This document shows, in pieces, positions 37,772 through 56,940 of a stretch of DNA of 64,000 nt. The notes under the pieces are model-generated. The model was not told the DNA's origin. It did no database searches and saw nothing but the letters and a program-made list of their open reading frames with translations. The number at the start of each line of letters is the position of its first letter. Position 1 is the first letter of the stretch. Location of the stretch: the NCBI GenBank assembly GCA_000320545.1, contig ADNK01000542.1, positions 62,001 through 126,000 of the forward strand, written 5' to 3'. The position numbers and the translations under genes are program-made. This stretch comes from Bigelowiella natans CCMP2755 (taxonomy: Eukaryota > Protista > Cercozoa).

Positions 37772-40196
37772 ATGATGGTCGTCGTAACAGAGCTACTACT
37801 CTTGTGCACACGTGTTTCCTTCGTCGCTCCTGCCGAATCCAGCATCTCTAATATTTTACCACCTTTGCTTCGACTCGAGAATGGAAGTACTGTGGCATCG
37901 AAGGAGGAATGGTGGGGGAGAAGAAGTGAGGTGCAAGGACTATTGGACGACCACATCCTTGGGTCTTGGCCAACGGATCCGATTGTATTGGAGCAGGCTG
38001 TGAAGATTAACTCATCAACACTGGGTGGGATGTGTGTTGTGTTATGTGCATTTTATGTGTGCGTGAGCGAGTGTGTGTTTGTGTGTGTGTGTGTCGTATA
38101 CACCTTTCCAAGTGTATACACATATCTATTTACGCCTGCTAACCGCATTTTATGGTACATCTAAAGCAGGGCCACGCAACAATGGCGCAACGTCGACATT
38201 CTATACGCTAACCTTCAACACTTCCAACGGCTGTGCAGGCATACCCAATGTCAGCTTTGACATCGAGCTTTTAAGCCCCGGCCCCTCCCCAGGACGATCA
38301 TACCCTCTCTTCCTCACACAATGGAATCACAGAGAGTGGGCCTTGTTGGGTCTTTCGCGTGGATATGTGTCTATCGTGTACCCAGGTGGAGACACACTAG
38401 ATGCTGCACCTGATTTCCAAAAAGCATATCCAAAAGCTACCATGATGTTGATCATGGCAAGGGCGTTGGTAGCATCCAAGACATTAGATCTCGTTTTCGT
38501 TGATAAATTTCAAGCTAAGCTTCCTAACATTACACGTTCTCACATATCCATCACTGGACACTCGCGCAATGGAAAACAAAGCCTGTTAGCCGCTGCGTAT
38601 GATGAGCGTATCACTGCGGTTGTTGGGTCAAGCCCAGGTGCTCCGATTGCATCGCCGTATCATTTATCATCCCATAACTTCTATGGAGAGGGACCAGATG
38701 CTGGCCAAGCTGGACATTGGTGGCTTGATAGAGTAGTAGACTACACGGCCCATCCTGAGACTTTACCAATGGATGGACACGGTGTTTTAGCATCCATTGC
38801 ACCGCGTCATTGTGCTGTATTCACAGGACTAACAGACCATGAAGGAGACATGCTGTTCGCCAACGAATACGCTTTTAAAGCTGCAATGACTGTTTACGAG
38901 TTATTCAATGCCACATCACATCTTCGTTTGTTCCACAGACCAGGGGATCATCATGGATTTATCGATGTTAACATGTATTTTGATTTTTTTGACTTCGCGT
39001 TTGGGCGTCAATACAGCTCATTCAGACCTTCTTGGCCTGGATTCAACGGCAAGCAAATGTACCTTAGTGCTGCTGGGTTTGATTTCGATCTTTGGGTCAA
39101 GACATATGGTGATTCTATTCCATCACCACCACCTTCAAGTGCCCCAATAAGTGACCGAATTGAATGGCTCGTCCAACATGACGACGCAAGTGCTGCTGCA
39201 TATGTCAGATCTGTGGGTACTAGTTATGCAGAGGAGGGTAGTGGTAGGTTTTCCTACAGAAGCGTGATGATGGCAGTTGATTACGATCGATTTGGTGATC
39301 TAAATAGACAGAGCCTATCGTTTGGTGGATACGTCACTGGTAATATGTATTGGCAAAAAAACAGAACGGCTGACGCTGCTACCCCCCTGCCCACAGTGTT
39401 ATGGCTTCATCCCTATGCGTACTCTACAGGATACCAACCTTCATATACAGAAAACGTTATCGAAAACATTGCAAGGGCAGGATTTGCCGTGTTTGCGTAC
39501 GATCAGATTGGATTTGCAACACGGTTGCGCGAAGGAGGTTCTAATTTCTATGCAAGGCATGAATCTGAGGCTTCCATATTTGGAAACATGATTCGAGATG
39601 CCCGTGCGGCATTAGATATGCTGGAATGCTTAACATCAGATATTCGCAACAACCTAACGCTATGTGGGACTGGAGAAGGCCACACATCAACTTATCCAGA
39701 TCTTCGCTCTCGCATCCCTAACTTGGATCCGTCTAACTTTATCGTTGCGGGCTATTCACTTGGCGGAAACATCGCATTGCACACTGCAGCACTTGATAAG
39801 AGAGTCAGTGCTGTGGCCTCATTTTCTGGTTTTACACCTTTCAGGAGTGACAGCAACGATCGCCCTACGGGTGGCATCAAACGTTTATACGATTTTCATG
39901 CTCTAATTCCTCGTTTGGGAATGTTTCGTGAGGATATGGTGAAGATTCCATATGATTATGATGAGGTACTCATTGCTATAGCACCAAGACCTACACTCTT
40001 GTGGACGCCCAGACACGATAGAGATGCGACGTATGCAGATGTACTTTCATGCATTCTCAAAGCAAAAACGGAGTGGCAAAAATCTAGTAAGGAAAAATGG
40101 GATGTGAACCATACAGCCCCTGATGCATACACCGACATGGGTCACAATGAGCTCTTTGGATTCACAGAATGGGCAAAGAAAATCCAACGATCGTGA
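37772..40196 (+). CDS. Two-domain esterase: CE15/glucuronoyl-esterase-like domain plus a second alpha/beta hydrolase domain; one intron (38025-38169)
   Basis: N-terminal LPPLLRLENGSTVASKEEWWGRRSEV, nucleophile motif ITGHSRNGKQSLLAAAYDERI and LASIAPR..HRPGDH define the first domain. The second has VLWLHPY, VFAYDQIGFATR, VAGYSLGG and LIAIAPRPTLL. The GT-AG intron restores frame (G|GG CCA). Confidence 0.85.
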
Positions 40197-47855: not shown

Positions 47856-49642
47856 TCAGCATGTGTTGATTGCCACAAGCTTGAATTTGTTTTCTGAAGC
47901 TCCAGCGTATTCAAAAATCAAAACGTGGGTGCTATGGGGCTCGATGTTCCAGCCTGGCCCAGTTCCTGCAACATCGAAGCCTTCGTCGACTTGTCGAAAC
48001 GGGTTTGCGAGGTAGAACCATTCTGTATAGGTCTGGGAATACCTTATTTCTGGATTCCTCCAGAGACCCTCAAGAAGCCACGGCTTGTCTTCCATTCCCT
48101 CTAATAGAACACTTGCATTTCCAAGGCCCTCGTAAGATCTGAGATATTCAATGGACAGCGAAGGAGTCTCACCAAACTTGATTGGGAAACGTATCTGGGC
48201 TCCAGGTTTGGATGTAATCCAACCAGGTTTGCCAGCGCGATCCTCAAAGATGTCCCAGGCTTTGGAACCATCCTTCGTTCGAGAATGAATTGCGAGATTA
48301 TTATGTGCGTCATGGCTTGACACTGGGTGCAGACAAACAGGGAGAGCGGGGCGTCGTCTGCCCAACCATACTGAAGTATCATTTGTTCCCGAGGAGGAAG
48401 GTGGCGTTCTACTCCCGCAACGCAGACTATCAATGGCCTGTTTCAAAGCTGCTGCAACAAAGTCTGCGTAGATTTGATGTATATGATACGGGGGATGGAC
48501 ATTGCGATTATGATCCGAACATTGCTTCAAAAGGCAGACCCCACCGACATTGCAGAGGGTGTAGAAATCGAGGACTTGTACCTGGTGGAATGAATACGTT
48601 GCGCGCACCATGTTGTAAAGTTCCGGTTTTTCCAGGCAGTCATCGGTCATTGGAATCATCGACATCAGCAACGTATTTGGATGGGTTTTCTTCAGCAAAA
48701 GCACCAGCTGATCGATAGCTTGTGAAATATCCTCTGGTGGTTTCTCGTCGAAAGCACAATCATTAACACCAAAGTCAATAAATATAAGGTCAGGCTCAGA
48801 TGGAGACTTCATAAGGTTGCTGATGCTTCCCAGAGCAGCTTCGGTGCCAGTTCCGCCCCTTGCCCTGTTGATAAGGCTGATATTTGTCTTAGGGAATGCC
48901 CGTTCGAGCCATTTGTACACCCGGTAGGGCCAGCTACACTGCTTTTGTGAGAATATCAGTATTTCGTCTTGGCCTAAATTGAAAAGGTGCGTTCAGTGGA
49001 TACTACGAAGGGTTTATTATCAGCAAATGCGTTCAGTGGATACGACGAGGAGTTTATCAGCAAATTCACCTCTTCCTGGGAATTCCTGGGAGCAAAGGGC
49101 CCCAGCTGTAAAAGAACCTCCCAAGGCCAGGATGGTTGTTCGAGTTCCAACAGAATTGAGCTTATGGAAGAACTTGTAAAATTTGGGGTCCTTTGGATCG
49201 AAGGAGCCGGTTAAGAGCAGCTTATGAACTTCGGGCATGAATACCTGGGTGTTGTTGGACGTAGTCTCTGATGAGAAGATCACTGACAAGGATGCGGAAA
49301 TTTTACCTGATACTTGCCGCACTCTGTCGCTCCTGATGGCATAGATCCAAAAGTGTAGAGACCAGGGTCAATCATTCCACGGCTAAAGTCGATACACTCA
49401 CCCGACGGAAAGCTCATTCTATCGATTTCAACGCCGCTTGAGTTGTAAGGTGGTGCATTCGACTTGGTAGAGGCACAGAGGCTCCCACTGAGCCCCTCCA
49501 AAGACGTGGCATTGCCGTACAGTAATATGAGCACCACGTTCAAACTGACAAGGAGAGCTGGCGCTCTCCACGAGACAATCGATGCGGATAGTGATGGCTC
49601 CCCATCGCCGCCGAACGACGTCACTCTCGCCGACGATGTCAT
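47856..49642 (-). CDS. SGNH/GDSL-type hydrolase with an N-terminal membrane anchor, three exons
   Basis: Block I ILALGGSFTAG, block II INRARGGTGT, block III PDLIFIDFGVND and block V VHP are present. N-terminal TM is ALLVSLNVVLILLY. Confidence 0.8.
48988..49064. repeat. Short tandem duplication (~37-40 bp x2) in an SGNH intron
   Basis: tgcgttcagtggatac..gtttat(tat)cagcaaa occurs at 48988 and 49028. Confidence 0.85.
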
Positions 49643-49989: not shown

Positions 49990-50830
49990 GTGGAATCTCC
50001 GCCGGTCCTGCTCTGAACGTCAAGTGTGGTTCCAGTGAAACTAGCGTCGCAGTGGCTTCCGTTCAAAACAACTTGCGCATGTCTGAAGATGCAGCCCTTT
50101 TGCAGCCCGAAGCCTGAACGTGCACTTTTCCGTTGGGCTGCAAATCCTGCACGTGAGACAGTCACTTGAATCACATTGATGTTTGACATTCACACGTCGC
50201 ATGTGGATTCATCTGTGTGTTGCACAGCCACTCAAACACTCAAACAAGTGAACACCATGACTGTGACGCTGCGCGCGACGAGCAGGCGACGTCGCCACTG
50301 GAAGAGAGCCGCATGACAGCTGAGCAAAACCCCAAGTCTCACACAGCACACACACAGGAGCTGCACATGCACGCAGCGCAAGAGGCACTGCATGCGTGCG
50401 ATGTGAGCTAGCAAGGCTTCTTGGCAACTCTGGAACTGTCATCTGACGCACCCCGTCGACTCTGAGACTGGATCGACATGTTTGACGTGTGTGTCCCCAG
50501 CGGCAAAACTTGAACCAAGACGCAGACGTCCATCTCAGGAGTCAACATGAAAACTCCCGTCCAGAGCAGGGACAAACTCGATCTGCAAATCGTTCAGCTG
50601 GTGTGACCTTGTTTGGATGTGGCCCAGAGCAGACAGGACCGCGACACATCAGCTGGAGGAGGTGGTGAGCAACCAGGCTCAAATTCGAACGAAAGACACG
50701 TGATGTGATGCATGGGTGAATGGCATCATTGTGTCAGAAGTGGACAACGTTGGAGATAGATGAACAAACGAGGAGAACGAAGTTGGGACCAGGAGCAAGG
50801 CTGCACCAACAGGGACAACAAGCATTTGAA
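49990..50830. other. TpA-depleted island 1 (decayed repeat or pseudogene)
   Basis: Only 2 TpA in 49991-50755, both in CTAGC. CpG is retained. No intact recognisable ORF. Confidence 0.8.
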
Positions 50831-52600: not shown

Positions 52601-54903
52601 ATGATGTCTGCCAGGCCTCTCGGTTCTAATTTTCGCTCTCGCTGCTTAACTTCATCTCGTATCCTCCCTCTACTTTTCTTCATGACTTCGCATGTGAGCG
52701 CCAAAATTGCAGCTAGGTCCACGCTGAGCAGGTAGTTGCTGACGACATATGTTATCGATTTTACTCTTTTATCGGGAGGAGCCTACGACGACGATGCGGT
52801 CCATGATGAGTTATGTTTCTGGAGATATAGTGTGCCTTTGATTGAGGATTTCACCGTGAACCGATTCAATCAAGCTGTGTTTCAACACCAATAAACGAAT
52901 CACGAACGCTAGATTAGCTGTGAAATCGAAAGAGAGCAAATTAGGGCCACTAGCATGAACGCAAAATTCATGATTATTTGTGTTTTTCTGTTTCCATTAA
53001 GATTCTTCGGCAGCAGGCCAGTTACTTCCTTTGAACGCAGAATGGGACCTCGTAATAGATATTTTCGGAGATTCTCTTCTGCAGGTTTATTCGCAATTTG
53101 ATGTGAGAGCAGAAACACTGAGCTCACTACATTGAACGTTTCGATTAGAGAACGCAGGTAATAGCAGAAAGTACAAATTTGCGCCGAGCACCACAATTCT
53201 TTCTTCTCCTCGTCATTCAATTGGCTTATTCCGAGGCAAAAGACTAGTCCATGCAAAGGTAGAAACAGTGTTAAGTATTAGCCTATTGTCTGTCCATCTC
53301 CTCTCTTGTCCTTAAGAAATACTCTAATACGATCACAATGATAGGGATTCGGAGCTGCGGATGATGATCAGGATGAACACTCTCGCAACGTTAGAACTAT
53401 GACCACAGGGGAGCTGAGAGCAGAGATCGAGTCGTTCGGGCTGGGCTCTGAAGATTGTGAAGATCGGCTGGATCTTGAGAGAAAGTACATGTTACTAATG
53501 TGTTCTCCTTTATTTGAATTATCGGCACTTTTATCACCCTGACGATAACTGCCTAATGTATTCTCCTTTGTTTGAATCATCGTCGGCACTTTTATCACCC
53601 TGGCGATGATTGATAACTGTAGACTGAAAGCTGTTCGACGAGGCACATACAAAGAGGGCAAGATGTAATTAACTCTCCATTTCTCCTCACAGCTGTGCCC
53701 ATTCTGTGACCATTGTTGCATATAATCTCACCACTCATTTGAAATGTTCCATTATTTCCCTTAGTAAAACTGCAGAGGATGCCGGTGGATACCTCAAATC
53801 CCAACGAACGTGAGAAAGCTCCTGATGGCATGCATGTGAACAAATTGGATGGTATTAATCGATCGCTATATTGTGGTTTCTAGAAGCTCCTCCGGACCAG
53901 CAATTGAAGATATATCTGGAATCTCATCGCAAGAGAATAAAGCAGCAGCTTTTGACCAGGCACTTCAACAAACAAGTGTCCAGAGCCAACAAGTATTAGA
54001 ATTAACAGCCAAATGATGGATGGATTAATTCAGCTTACTCAATAGATAATTTAGTATGGATGACGACTATGATTCTTACTTATTTGACAACTCACAACAG
54101 GCCCAAGCAGAATCATTTGATGCAGCAATCCAAGATCGTCTTGACTCTGTAACAAGCATTTCAAGCGTAAAGAGGGCAAAAACCCTTCGCTTAACAGACC
54201 TTACTCTGAGCGCTGCTGTTCATATTATTCTTATTCTTATTATTATTATTATTATTGTTATTATTTACTTTTATATTTTATAAACACAGATGGCGAAGAA
54301 AGGTCAGAAAGTTTTTGATCTGCTGGAGTACGTGAATCATATTGCATCAAGAAAGGTGTTTGTTTGTTCATTGACATATTCTTTTTCTTTTTTATGTCAG
54401 GTATCCGTGCGAACATGAAATCAAGATTGTAGGAGCCAAAGCATCGGAGATTGGTGATCCTATTTGCAACACCATGTTTTCGGATATTCATTATTAAAGC
54501 ATGATTTGCATAAAATTTTTATATCAGAGATGCGAGTCAGGTCTATTGTTGGTGATACGACTGGTACAGACCCGGAGGTTCTCAAAACATCGTCTCGTGA
54601 AAAGGTTGGTAGTAGTTCATTTTGCTATCAACTAGAGCGCGTACTGGCGGTAAGGGGTAGGGATTGAAATACATCTACAAGAGCACTGAAAAGTAGTTTA
54701 TTTGTGCGATGATCAAACCACCTTAAACGCGACGCATAGGCTATTGTCGTAAATAATACTGATTTCCAATAATCTGCGTTCTTATCTGGCCGTAGGGTAA
54801 ATGGATCTCAATCTCAGTGATGGCTCCTGTCAGTAGTTCAGAAATGCTCTATGATATCTATGCTAGACTGAACAGCGAAGAAAGATTTCGTTATGTGATG
54901 TAG
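52601..54903 (+). CDS. Multi-exon protein with a C-terminal DUF493 (YbeD/HP0495-like) domain, probably organelle-targeted
   Basis: Last exons YPCEHEIKIVG (54401), ..KTSSREK and GKWISISVMAPVSSSEMLYDIYARLNSEERFRYVM* (54797-54903) match the YbeD pattern. Start is MMSARPLGSNFRSRCLTSSRILPLLFF. Confidence 0.75.
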
Positions 54904-55279
54904 GGAGATAAAATATAGGCGACAATGAAAAATCTGTCTAATGCAACAGTCGCCTAGTTGCTACCGATGTAAATACCCCTTCAAACTAATGGAAACGTGA
55001 AAAATATCTCAGTCTGCAACCATTTTGTGTGTTTTAAGTTACTGCTTACATATCCCCAACTGATCGCATTTGATGAAAATATTGTCAGCAATTAATTATG
55101 TGAAAACAACCTAGTAAGCACTTTTTGTCCATATTTTAAAAAACGAATCGGGAAAGGTAGTACAGTGCGTTTAATGGATCGCAAAAATTTTGTACACCGA
55201 AGGTCCTTGCAGTTGATTCGACGAAACTCAAGAATTATGTGTAGTGTAGTTAATTTGATGTTTCAATGTGATTGGTAAA

Positions 55280-56940
55280 TGGCGAATCGATGTTGGTGTG
55301 AACATGGAATCTTTTTCGTTGAGTTGCATTTTTCCTGAGCATCGTGTGGTGCAGATGAAATGAACTTGATCACGTGACATCGCTGCGGTTTGACAACGAT
55401 TTGGACGCATGTTGCAACGCCGCACAGTCAATTGTGACAGATGGACAATGACGCTTGTTGTGCCAGCATGACCACTTGTGCACGATCGCACTCGTGCTGT
55501 CACCATCAAGAGTTTCATTTGGATGCCATCGATCCAGTTTGAATGAGGCAATCCACCTGCGTCACTGGTTGTGTCTGCAGCCTGCTAGCTCGACAGTGGC
55601 GGGGCCACAATTCTCAAGTTCAAACACAATGCACACGTGTCAACGAAACGTGTGAAACAAAGGTCGCATTGTGATGAAAATTTCAGCACAGCCAGGCAGC
55701 ACGTGCCTCCATGAAGTGAAGGCGGGAAAGGTGTGACCCGCTGACCTCTTCTTTGTTGCGTGGGAAGGTCGCAGGTGTTTCTCCAATTGTGCAATGCAAG
55801 ACTGTTTCCAGACTCAGAGCCCTCTTGCCAGACAAGAGAATCTGACGAATTTTCAGATCGTTGGATCGAGCCCTGAAGGCCATTGCCTTGTCTGATGACA
55901 GTGAGAGCTTCAGTGCCAAAGAGACCGCGCATCGTTTTTCAACCGTGGAATCACAAGCAATGAAGATCACTTTTTTGGCCCTTTTCGACAAGATTTTTCG
56001 GAGTTGAGTTTTCATCGTGACGATGATGAGGCACCCATTGCAATTGCTGCCCTCTAGCGACCAGTCTGAGTGGCGCACCAACGATGCACACAACGAGACT
56101 CAGCACACCACACGATGCGCATGAGAACAGCGAGGGACTGTCGAGATGGTTCAAACCTTCCTTCCGTGCTAGCGTGCTAGCGTGGCTGGGTGGGTCGATC
56201 GTTCAAGGAAGAGCGTGCATGTTGCATTGAAACTCTCAATTTTGTGGGCAGTTGCCGCGACCCACTGGACCAAATGATCAACCCACTTGACTGGGAAGCA
56301 AGTGAACGAACGAACGAGTGCACGAATGAGAGTGCTGGAGTGCACGAGTGAAGCGCACTTCAAAGGTGTGACCAGAAAGATCATCTGCAGATGTGTCAAC
56401 TCATTCACTTCCTCTCCAATGGAAGAACGAATGAACGAGTGATTGAAGTGATCCAAATAGCAAGCCAGGAAGAAAGAACGAAGAGTTTGTTTGAACGATG
56501 CGAGCAAATTGAACGAGCAAGTGAACGAAAGGAGTGATTCCGGTTGAGTGAGTGAACGAATGAGTGAATGAACGAACGAAGTGATTCCAAGGGAGATCTG
56601 AAAGGATCATTGGACGTGCCAACTCATCCACATCCTCCTCAACTTGCCAACCAAGAAAAGTTGAGGGTTCGTTCATTCACGCGAGGTTCACCGCAGTTCA
56701 AAGTTCGCAAGAAAAAGAACTGCTCAAAGGGAAATAAGAAACAAGAAACAATGTTGATTGACTGCATTTCCAAAGCGTTGCGTGACACTTGCAAAGTGCG
56801 AAACGCAGTGCCTCGAGCTGAAAACAACGAGGAGGCTGGCGAAGACTGGGAGACAGCAGGGGGCTCGTCACCTTGAATGGAACCGCACATCACTGATGGC
56901 TCGAGAATCTGAGGTGTGCGACAATGAAAAAAAAGACAGC
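55280..56940 (-). mobile_element. Degenerate Ty1/copia-like retroelement relic inside TpA-depleted island 2
   Basis: ORF 55683-56093 contains NGCLIIVTMKTQLRKILSKRAKKVIFIACDSTVEKRCAV. This aligns to the copia post-integrase SH3-like motif FGCLAYVHVPKEKRKKLDPRAKKCIFVGY....KGYRV. Only 6 TpA occur in ~1.66 kb. Confidence 0.6.

Follow-up and report, generated by a model that had tools for sequence, protein, structure and literature searches.

TpA erasure in short intergenic tracts of Bigelowiella natans, and the origin of a tyrosine-free 136-codon open frame

In Bigelowiella natans, foreign DNA that has integrated into the genome undergoes a hypermutation specific for TpA (Mettrop et al., bioRxiv 2026, 10.64898/2026.01.13.699255). 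During mutation accumulation, integrated NCLDV and virophage DNA received 231 of the 302 new nuclear point mutations, and 230 of these 231 were A>G or T>C changes, all of them on TpA and yielding TpG or CpA. Genome-wide, 124 clusters of 1-kb windows depleted in TpA and enriched in CpA+TpG were reported, along with 324 predicted coding sequences of low TpA content. The NCLDV region had a TA observed/expected ratio (o/e) of 0.45 and a TA frequency of 3.3% against a background of 6.0%, and an adenine deaminase, for example an ADAT2 homologue, was proposed as the hypothetical enzyme (10.64898/2026.01.13.699255). The assembly has one NCLDV major capsid gene, at G000:C3187:124672-125196, and the 23.5 kb sampled around it yielded TA o/e values of 0.46-0.50 and TA frequencies of 3.4-3.6% (6.4% for the background of the window described below), the same TpA statistics as in the preprint.

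Here we examined a stretch of 64,000 nucleotides of the B. natans genome, hereafter the window. The mean distance from one TA to the next in the window was 15.5 bp, and 7 of the 8 longest gaps, 206-469 bp in size, were located within two places, here called islands A and B. The features that define the setting are:

55277..56940, no strand: island B, a TpA-erased tract of 1664 bp, delimited by TA-gap and dinucleotide statistics
50043..50756, no strand: island A, a second TpA-erased tract of 714 bp, delimited by TA statistics
53430..55330, plus strand: a spliced gene supported by RNA contigs and reads, with GT..AG joints at 53484/53623, 53664/53765, 53992/54101 and 54602/54794

Island B contained 6 TA, compared with 110.8 expected from the rate in the rest of the window, and its rho values were 0.056 for TA, 1.64 for TG and 1.37 for CA. 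Four of the six surviving TA were in the context CTAG. The borders of the tract were sharp and its G+C content was 0.49, versus 0.40-0.43 in the flanks. RNA from the upstream spliced gene stopped at about 55327-55363, which is the left edge of the island, and the next plus-strand open reading frame (57219) started about 280 bp beyond the right edge. DNA and protein comparisons with the 91.4-Mb assembly returned only self matches, indicating that island B is present in a single copy, and no long direct repeats or LTRs were found across 49-58 kb of the window. Island A contained 1 TA versus 47.5 expected, again within CTAG, and had a rho TA of 0.027 and a rho(CA+TG) of 1.73. The two islands had no sequence in common, and no protein-family signal was detected in any frame of island A.

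The published cluster definition demands a rho TpA of <= 0.43, a rho CpA+TpG of >= 1.52 and a run of >= 3 consecutive 1-kb windows (10.64898/2026.01.13.699255). Both islands were far below the TpA limit (0.056 and 0.027 for B and A, respectively), and their rho CpA+TpG values were 1.50 in island B and 1.73 in island A, as calculated by a whole-tract formula while the published limit of 1.52 refers to 1-kb windows. At 1.66 kb and 0.71 kb, the tracts are shorter than three such windows and would therefore escape the published cluster list.

Several other observations were made in the window. Positions 56300-56600, inside island B, contained a degenerate short tandem motif with GAACGAATGA-like units, read as SFxHS repeats in one frame. 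At 56787-56833 the Logan DNA contigs of run X4 broke and the word depth jumped to about 630, pointing to a short repeat, present in many copies, at the island's right end. Island A began right after an apparent coding exon that ended near 50.1 kb. Further upstream, a 707-aa open frame at 38073-40196 (plus strand) contained two esterase-type regions, one matching PF22244, the fungal-type glucuronyl esterase family (2e-23), and one a further alpha/beta hydrolase part, and a GDSL lipase-like open reading frame was located at 47856-48920 (minus strand).

The direction of the mutational process was best seen in copia retrotransposons elsewhere in the genome, of which both TpA-erased and intact copies were present:

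G000:C3733:10500-18500: L022, an intact, TA-normal copia element of family B
G000:C1239:59500-67500: L023, an intact, TA-normal copia element of family A
G000 contigs C1213, C485, C873, C1756 and C2995: L024-L028, erased copia copies

The erased copies had TA o/e values of 0.01-0.09 and tyrosine contents of 0.1-0.2%, as compared to 0.84-1.09 and 3.8-4.9% for L022, L023 and a further copy, L029. Within family A, the 292 TA of the intact L023 corresponded to 132 CA, 125 TG and 25 TA in the erased L025, with only 2.3% of the sites outside TA differing between the two. The same behaviour was observed for L023 and L026 and for the family B pair L022 and L027. At 102 sites one of the two erased copies L025 and L026 had TG and the other CA, and the intact copy had TA at 94 of these. 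Since TA is the only state one step away from both TG and CA, this sets the polarity of the change with no assumption about which copy is older. The mutation direction in this genome is thus from TA to TG or CA.

The outcomes TG and CA were about equally frequent (125 versus 132, 151 versus 118 and 209 versus 180), and no strand-coordinated runs of either were found along the elements (runs test, z -1.2, 0.8 and 0.1). The equal numbers and random order indicate that both strands of duplex DNA were hit site by site, and the lack of coordinated runs argues against one-pass editing of single-stranded RNA or cDNA before integration. The random two-strand pattern is consistent with the in situ mutation described in the preprint.

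The consequences for the encoded proteins were drastic. Of the 73 tyrosines of the intact family A element, 41 had become His and 30 Cys in L025, with 2 retained, and 41 had become Cys and 32 His in L026; the 76 tyrosines of the family B pair corresponded to 38 Cys, 33 His, 4 Tyr and 1 Arg in L027. Overall, 215 of 222 tyrosines were replaced by Cys or His in erased copia relative to intact kin, and pure TA>TG/CA changes accounted for 79-86% of all amino-acid differences. In the SH3 domain of erased copia, LGYD had changed to LGCD or LGHD and GTY to GTC. Nevertheless the frames remained open. Enumeration of all sense-codon pairs showed that TA>TG or TA>CA never makes a stop codon, and that existing stops are altered or lost (TAA to TGA or CAA, TAG to TGG or CAG). 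Because no stop is created, the frames of the erased copia copies stay open over 1158-1751 codons, as ghost ORFs, and junk frames also run long in the islands.

The surroundings of these elements were also informative. Erased blocks around the dead copies L024-L028 were at least 8 kb in size, with edges as sharp as a drop from 25 to 1 TA per 250 bp. The intact elements L022 and L023 were nested in already erased DNA, with 0-6 TA per 250 bp in the flanks versus 10-44 inside, so the erasure is either older than these insertions or did not spread into them. Retention of the tetranucleotide CTAG was not absolute: all 10 sites were retained in L025, 6 of 10 in L026 and only 1 of 7 in L027. CTA or TAG alone, with a single flank, gave no protection.

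We then turn to the open reading frame in island B from which a sequence-only reading of the window had argued for the loss of TpA by mutation:

55683..56093, minus strand: 136-aa open reading frame with a TTG start, within a stop-to-stop frame of 138 aa at 55686-56099
55953..55955, minus strand: TGT, Cys49 of the open frame (first Cys), on the conserved GY tyrosine column in the alignments that can be inspected
55929..55931, minus strand: TGC, Cys57 of the open frame (second Cys), outside all computed alignments
55938..56036, minus strand: copia-like stretch, residues 22-54 of the open frame, the sole part that aligns, weakly, to the SH3-like domain at the C terminus of Ty1/copia integrase

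The ORF includes the stretch RAKKVIFIACDSTVEKRCAV and contains 0 Tyr, 7 Cys and 4 His; that reading had described it, and the positions of its two codons, accurately. Tyrosine codons require TA, and each of the six frames of island B had 0-1 Tyr, 17-32 Cys and 17-32 His. The lack of tyrosine and the richness in Cys and His are thus independent of frame and are no mark of former coding in the 136-aa frame; like the long open frames, they are found in any frame because TA is absent from the island. The 111 stops in island B comprised 101 TGA, 9 TAG and 1 TAA, their density was 3.3 per 100 codons versus 5.1 in the window, and the mean open run was 27.5 codons versus 18.7, i.e. about 1.5 times longer. 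Together with the codon enumeration, this bears out the earlier proposal that the loss of TAA stops keeps junk ORFs open.

The mechanism that we propose is that TA would be changed to TG on one strand or to CA on the other (A:T to G:C), near saturation in island B, which would leave no tyrosine in any frame and enrich TGY (Cys) and CAY (His) codons, and that, with TAA and TAG stops lost, the length of accidental frames would increase about 1.5-fold. In our view the 136-aa ORF is most likely such a frame, accidental or a ghost, held open by the absence of TAA and TAG. We consider it probable, with good confidence, that island B was driven near saturation by the TpA-specific hypermutation of B. 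natans and that the ORF is an accidental frame and not a gene.

The strongest alternative, to which we give clearly less than an even chance, is that the ORF is a genuine and very ancient piece of a Ty1/copia pol gene, erased after insertion, in which both cysteine codons were formerly conserved tyrosines. The only match of the ORF among 24,736 Pfam families was to PF25597 (SH3_retrovirus), the SH3-like domain located behind the integrase core of Ty1/copia elements. Residues 22-52 aligned to profile positions 14-44 with no gaps over 31 residues, with G22 and C23 at the FGC motif and Cys49 at column 41, where the tyrosines of the copia elements of this genome are also located if their one deletion lies further on. 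A comparison with 8 copia polyproteins of the genome using hhalign chose the same SH3 region out of 1570 columns, with Cys49 opposite the Tyr of LGYD and an identity at QLRK (P 0.066, probability 0.8%). Moreover, the erased copy L027 reads GCD....TC.VS, resembling ACD.....RC.VS in the ORF, and TpA-erased DNA in this genome is often derived from transposons. Given such a transposon prior, we estimate the chance that the sole match would be copia-specific and that hhalign would select the same region and put the first Cys on the GY tyrosine at about 0.02-0.1. This would be an unlikely coincidence, and for that reason a real relic keeps an appreciable probability.

However, the PF25597 score was 14.7-14.8 bits (E 0.028), about half of the curated cut-off of 27 bits, and island pieces yielded unrelated matches that were at least as strong (DUF6233, 0.017; Bromo_TP, 0.023; Hypoth_Ymh, 0.014). 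Neither half of the ORF motif scored against PF25597 at E values up to 10, whereas half-domains of genuine copia copies scored 14.6-30.8 bits. Using 1000 dinucleotide-preserving shuffles of island B as the null, a local HMM of the SH3 domain (51 columns) gave the ORF 6.0 bits with an empirical P of 0.061, and an HMM of the whole polyprotein gave a P of 0.22. The sequence-only reading had predicted that the score should rise if tyrosines were restored. For this analysis, Y, C and H were merged to one letter in the SH3 profile, queries and shuffles alike, which credits the ORF with all tyrosines that it could have lost; the ORF went from 6.0 to 7.0 bits while the 95th percentile of the null went from 6.3 to 7.7 (P 0.071), so the ORF stayed within the range of chance. 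Chains of frameshift-tolerant tblastn HSPs against the copia elements of the genome gave a P of 0.65 (160 dinucleotide shuffles). By this chain test (P 0.65) we rejected an apparent colinearity of three HSPs with L025, at residues 800-830, 863-905 and the SH3 domain (~829-862).

The placement of the motif was also ambiguous. A phmmer search of the ORF against the copia polyproteins produced only noise, with three mutually exclusive placements in the zinc-finger region, the SH3 domain and RNase H. The noise-level alignments to the RNase H motif CDS..A.S.A.K and to the integrase zinc-finger region (AACD in L007 and L009, KACD in L025) would both make the first Cys ancestral. As for the second Cys, it lies beyond the alignments, since the Pfam match ends at residue 52 and those of hhalign and HMMER at residue 54. 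Cys57 meets the tyrosine of GTY only via an insertion of one residue placed by hand, the spacing of the two cysteines being 8 residues in the ORF and that of the corresponding copia tyrosines 7. Of the two sites proposed to match conserved copia tyrosines, only the first Cys falls, in these weak alignments, on such a column (GY). Among the related elements, the first site was Tyr in intact kin and not Cys, the second was Tyr in L022 and L029 and Phe in L023, and both were Cys or His in erased kin.

No other part of a copia element was recovered. The integrase core, the conservation of which normally exceeds that of the SH3-like domain by far, would be expected at about 56.1-56.6 kb, just upstream of the ORF within island B, and it was absent in every frame. 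More broadly, no integrase core, reverse transcriptase (RT), gag or LTR was detectable in any frame, and tblastn of the ORFs of 20 copia loci against the whole window gave no match in island B. Retroelement families besides PF25597 were found neither in 18 minus-strand open pieces nor in 38 further ones (56 pieces over islands A and B), and hhalign of the pieces that flank the ORF gave P values of 0.67-0.83. In genuine copia, Pfam scores changed from 41 bits in intact to 29-32 bits in erased copies for SH3 and from 198 to 125-139 bits for RVT_2; erasure costs only about one fourth to one third of the score and cannot account for the missing domains.

We conclude that a Ty1/copia integrase SH3-like domain may have left its last trace in the ORF motif, an assignment that we find somewhat less probable than its opposite. 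If it is a relic, the first Cys would descend from the GY tyrosine, although the locus itself cannot show this, and we would infer TAT and TAC as the former states of TGT and TGC. The two Cys codons are not sufficient to reveal the direction of mutation, since the copia match is at the level of noise and has no other copia part beside it. What stands of that argument is the direction itself, which is given by the preprint, the paired copia copies and the mass balance described below; that the two codons of the ORF were formerly tyrosine is unproven.

A second alternative is that TA was never present in island B or that it was excluded by selection, through a TA-cutting nuclease, TA-targeting transposons or UA-dependent RNA decay in a spacer or UTR. 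Island B starts at the point where transcripts of the upstream gene stop, making a role as a 3' end or spacer conceivable, and the survival of TA in CTAG hints at sequence-specific rules. Relative to the rest of the window, however, 105 TA are missing from island B and the G+C content is raised by 104 bases; this equality is as predicted by conversion and fits TA conversion as the origin of the tract. In the paired copia elements conversion is seen directly, the ancestral state being TA at 94 of the 102 discordant sites, and new TpA mutations arose in culture (10.64898/2026.01.13.699255). Nor would selection clear dead transposons of TA to the same degree in every frame and on both strands, and we regard this alternative as highly improbable.

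Least credible of all is a genuine, lineage-specific gene encoding a small Cys-rich protein: the 136 codons of the ORF rank among the longest open frames of island B, but overlapping frames of similar length are present around it on both strands, a protein search of the assembly found no relatives, none of the 24,736 Pfam families scored over threshold, a protein-atlas search returned no usable match and a low recognition score, and the RNA depth was zero over 55561-56151, with a few reads at 56152-56939, in the approximately 6% that was read of X21, the sole RNA run from the organism, a depth too shallow to prove silence.

With regard to what these results mean, the direction of mutation and its corollary for open frames are already known or better shown elsewhere than at this locus. 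Taken alone, island B is a further tract of saturated TpA erasure and of little import, and the codon-level argument cannot stand by itself. The copia comparison, on the other hand, provides a check, from sequence only, of the published mutational signature on retrotransposons, and shows that the hypermutation wipes out tyrosines wholesale. Since no stop codons are made, the annotation of this genome will hold long ghost ORFs, and short intergenic tracts under the 3-kb cluster threshold of the preprint show the same footprint. We lean towards a broader proposal, with some reserve, namely that nonsense-free TpA hypermutation keeps dead retroelements and spacers as kilobase-sized ghost ORFs and that much of the predicted gene set with low TpA content consists of such ghosts. 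If this is true, ghost ORFs would be a standing pool of Cys/His-rich frames that are open to translation or recruitment, and the ratio of Tyr to Cys/His together with the TG/CA discordance between copies would serve as a clock and a polarity test.

Compared with known systems, the ORF shares with the PF25597 domain a best alignment in which FGC...LR...hh[GA][Y/C]D is in register, and differs from it in a score of half the cut-off and in the absence of a neighbouring integrase core, RT, gag and LTR. A process with some likeness to TpA erasure is RIP in fungi, which converts CpA to TpA in duplicated DNA and leaves an excess of TpA and many stop codons. Both are dinucleotide-specific transition hypermutations that inactivate transposons in place. 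The chemistry and footprint are opposite, however, in that TpA is destroyed here and no stop can be created, and whereas duplicated DNA is the target of RIP, island B occurs only once in the genome. Editing of the ADAR/APOBEC type is similar in its deaminase-like transition spectrum with a preference for the 5' neighbour; ADAR prefers U or T 5' of the edited A, and UAG is favoured. In B. natans, by contrast, both strands are hit equally with no strand-coordinated runs, and CTAG, which holds the favoured UAG, is mostly spared, to an extent that varies by copy.

The main text of the preprint contains none of the terms tyrosine, stop codon, CTAG, copia, retrotranspos and open reading, and its live regions are inserts of 186 kb (NCLDV) and 25 kb (virophage) that are only partly depleted (10.64898/2026.01.13.699255). 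Island B is unlike these regions in being 1.66 kb in size, saturated, intergenic and of unproven origin. Like the islands, the B. natans system of the preprint combines low TA with high TG and CA, an A:T to G:C change, and sharply bounded local tracts.
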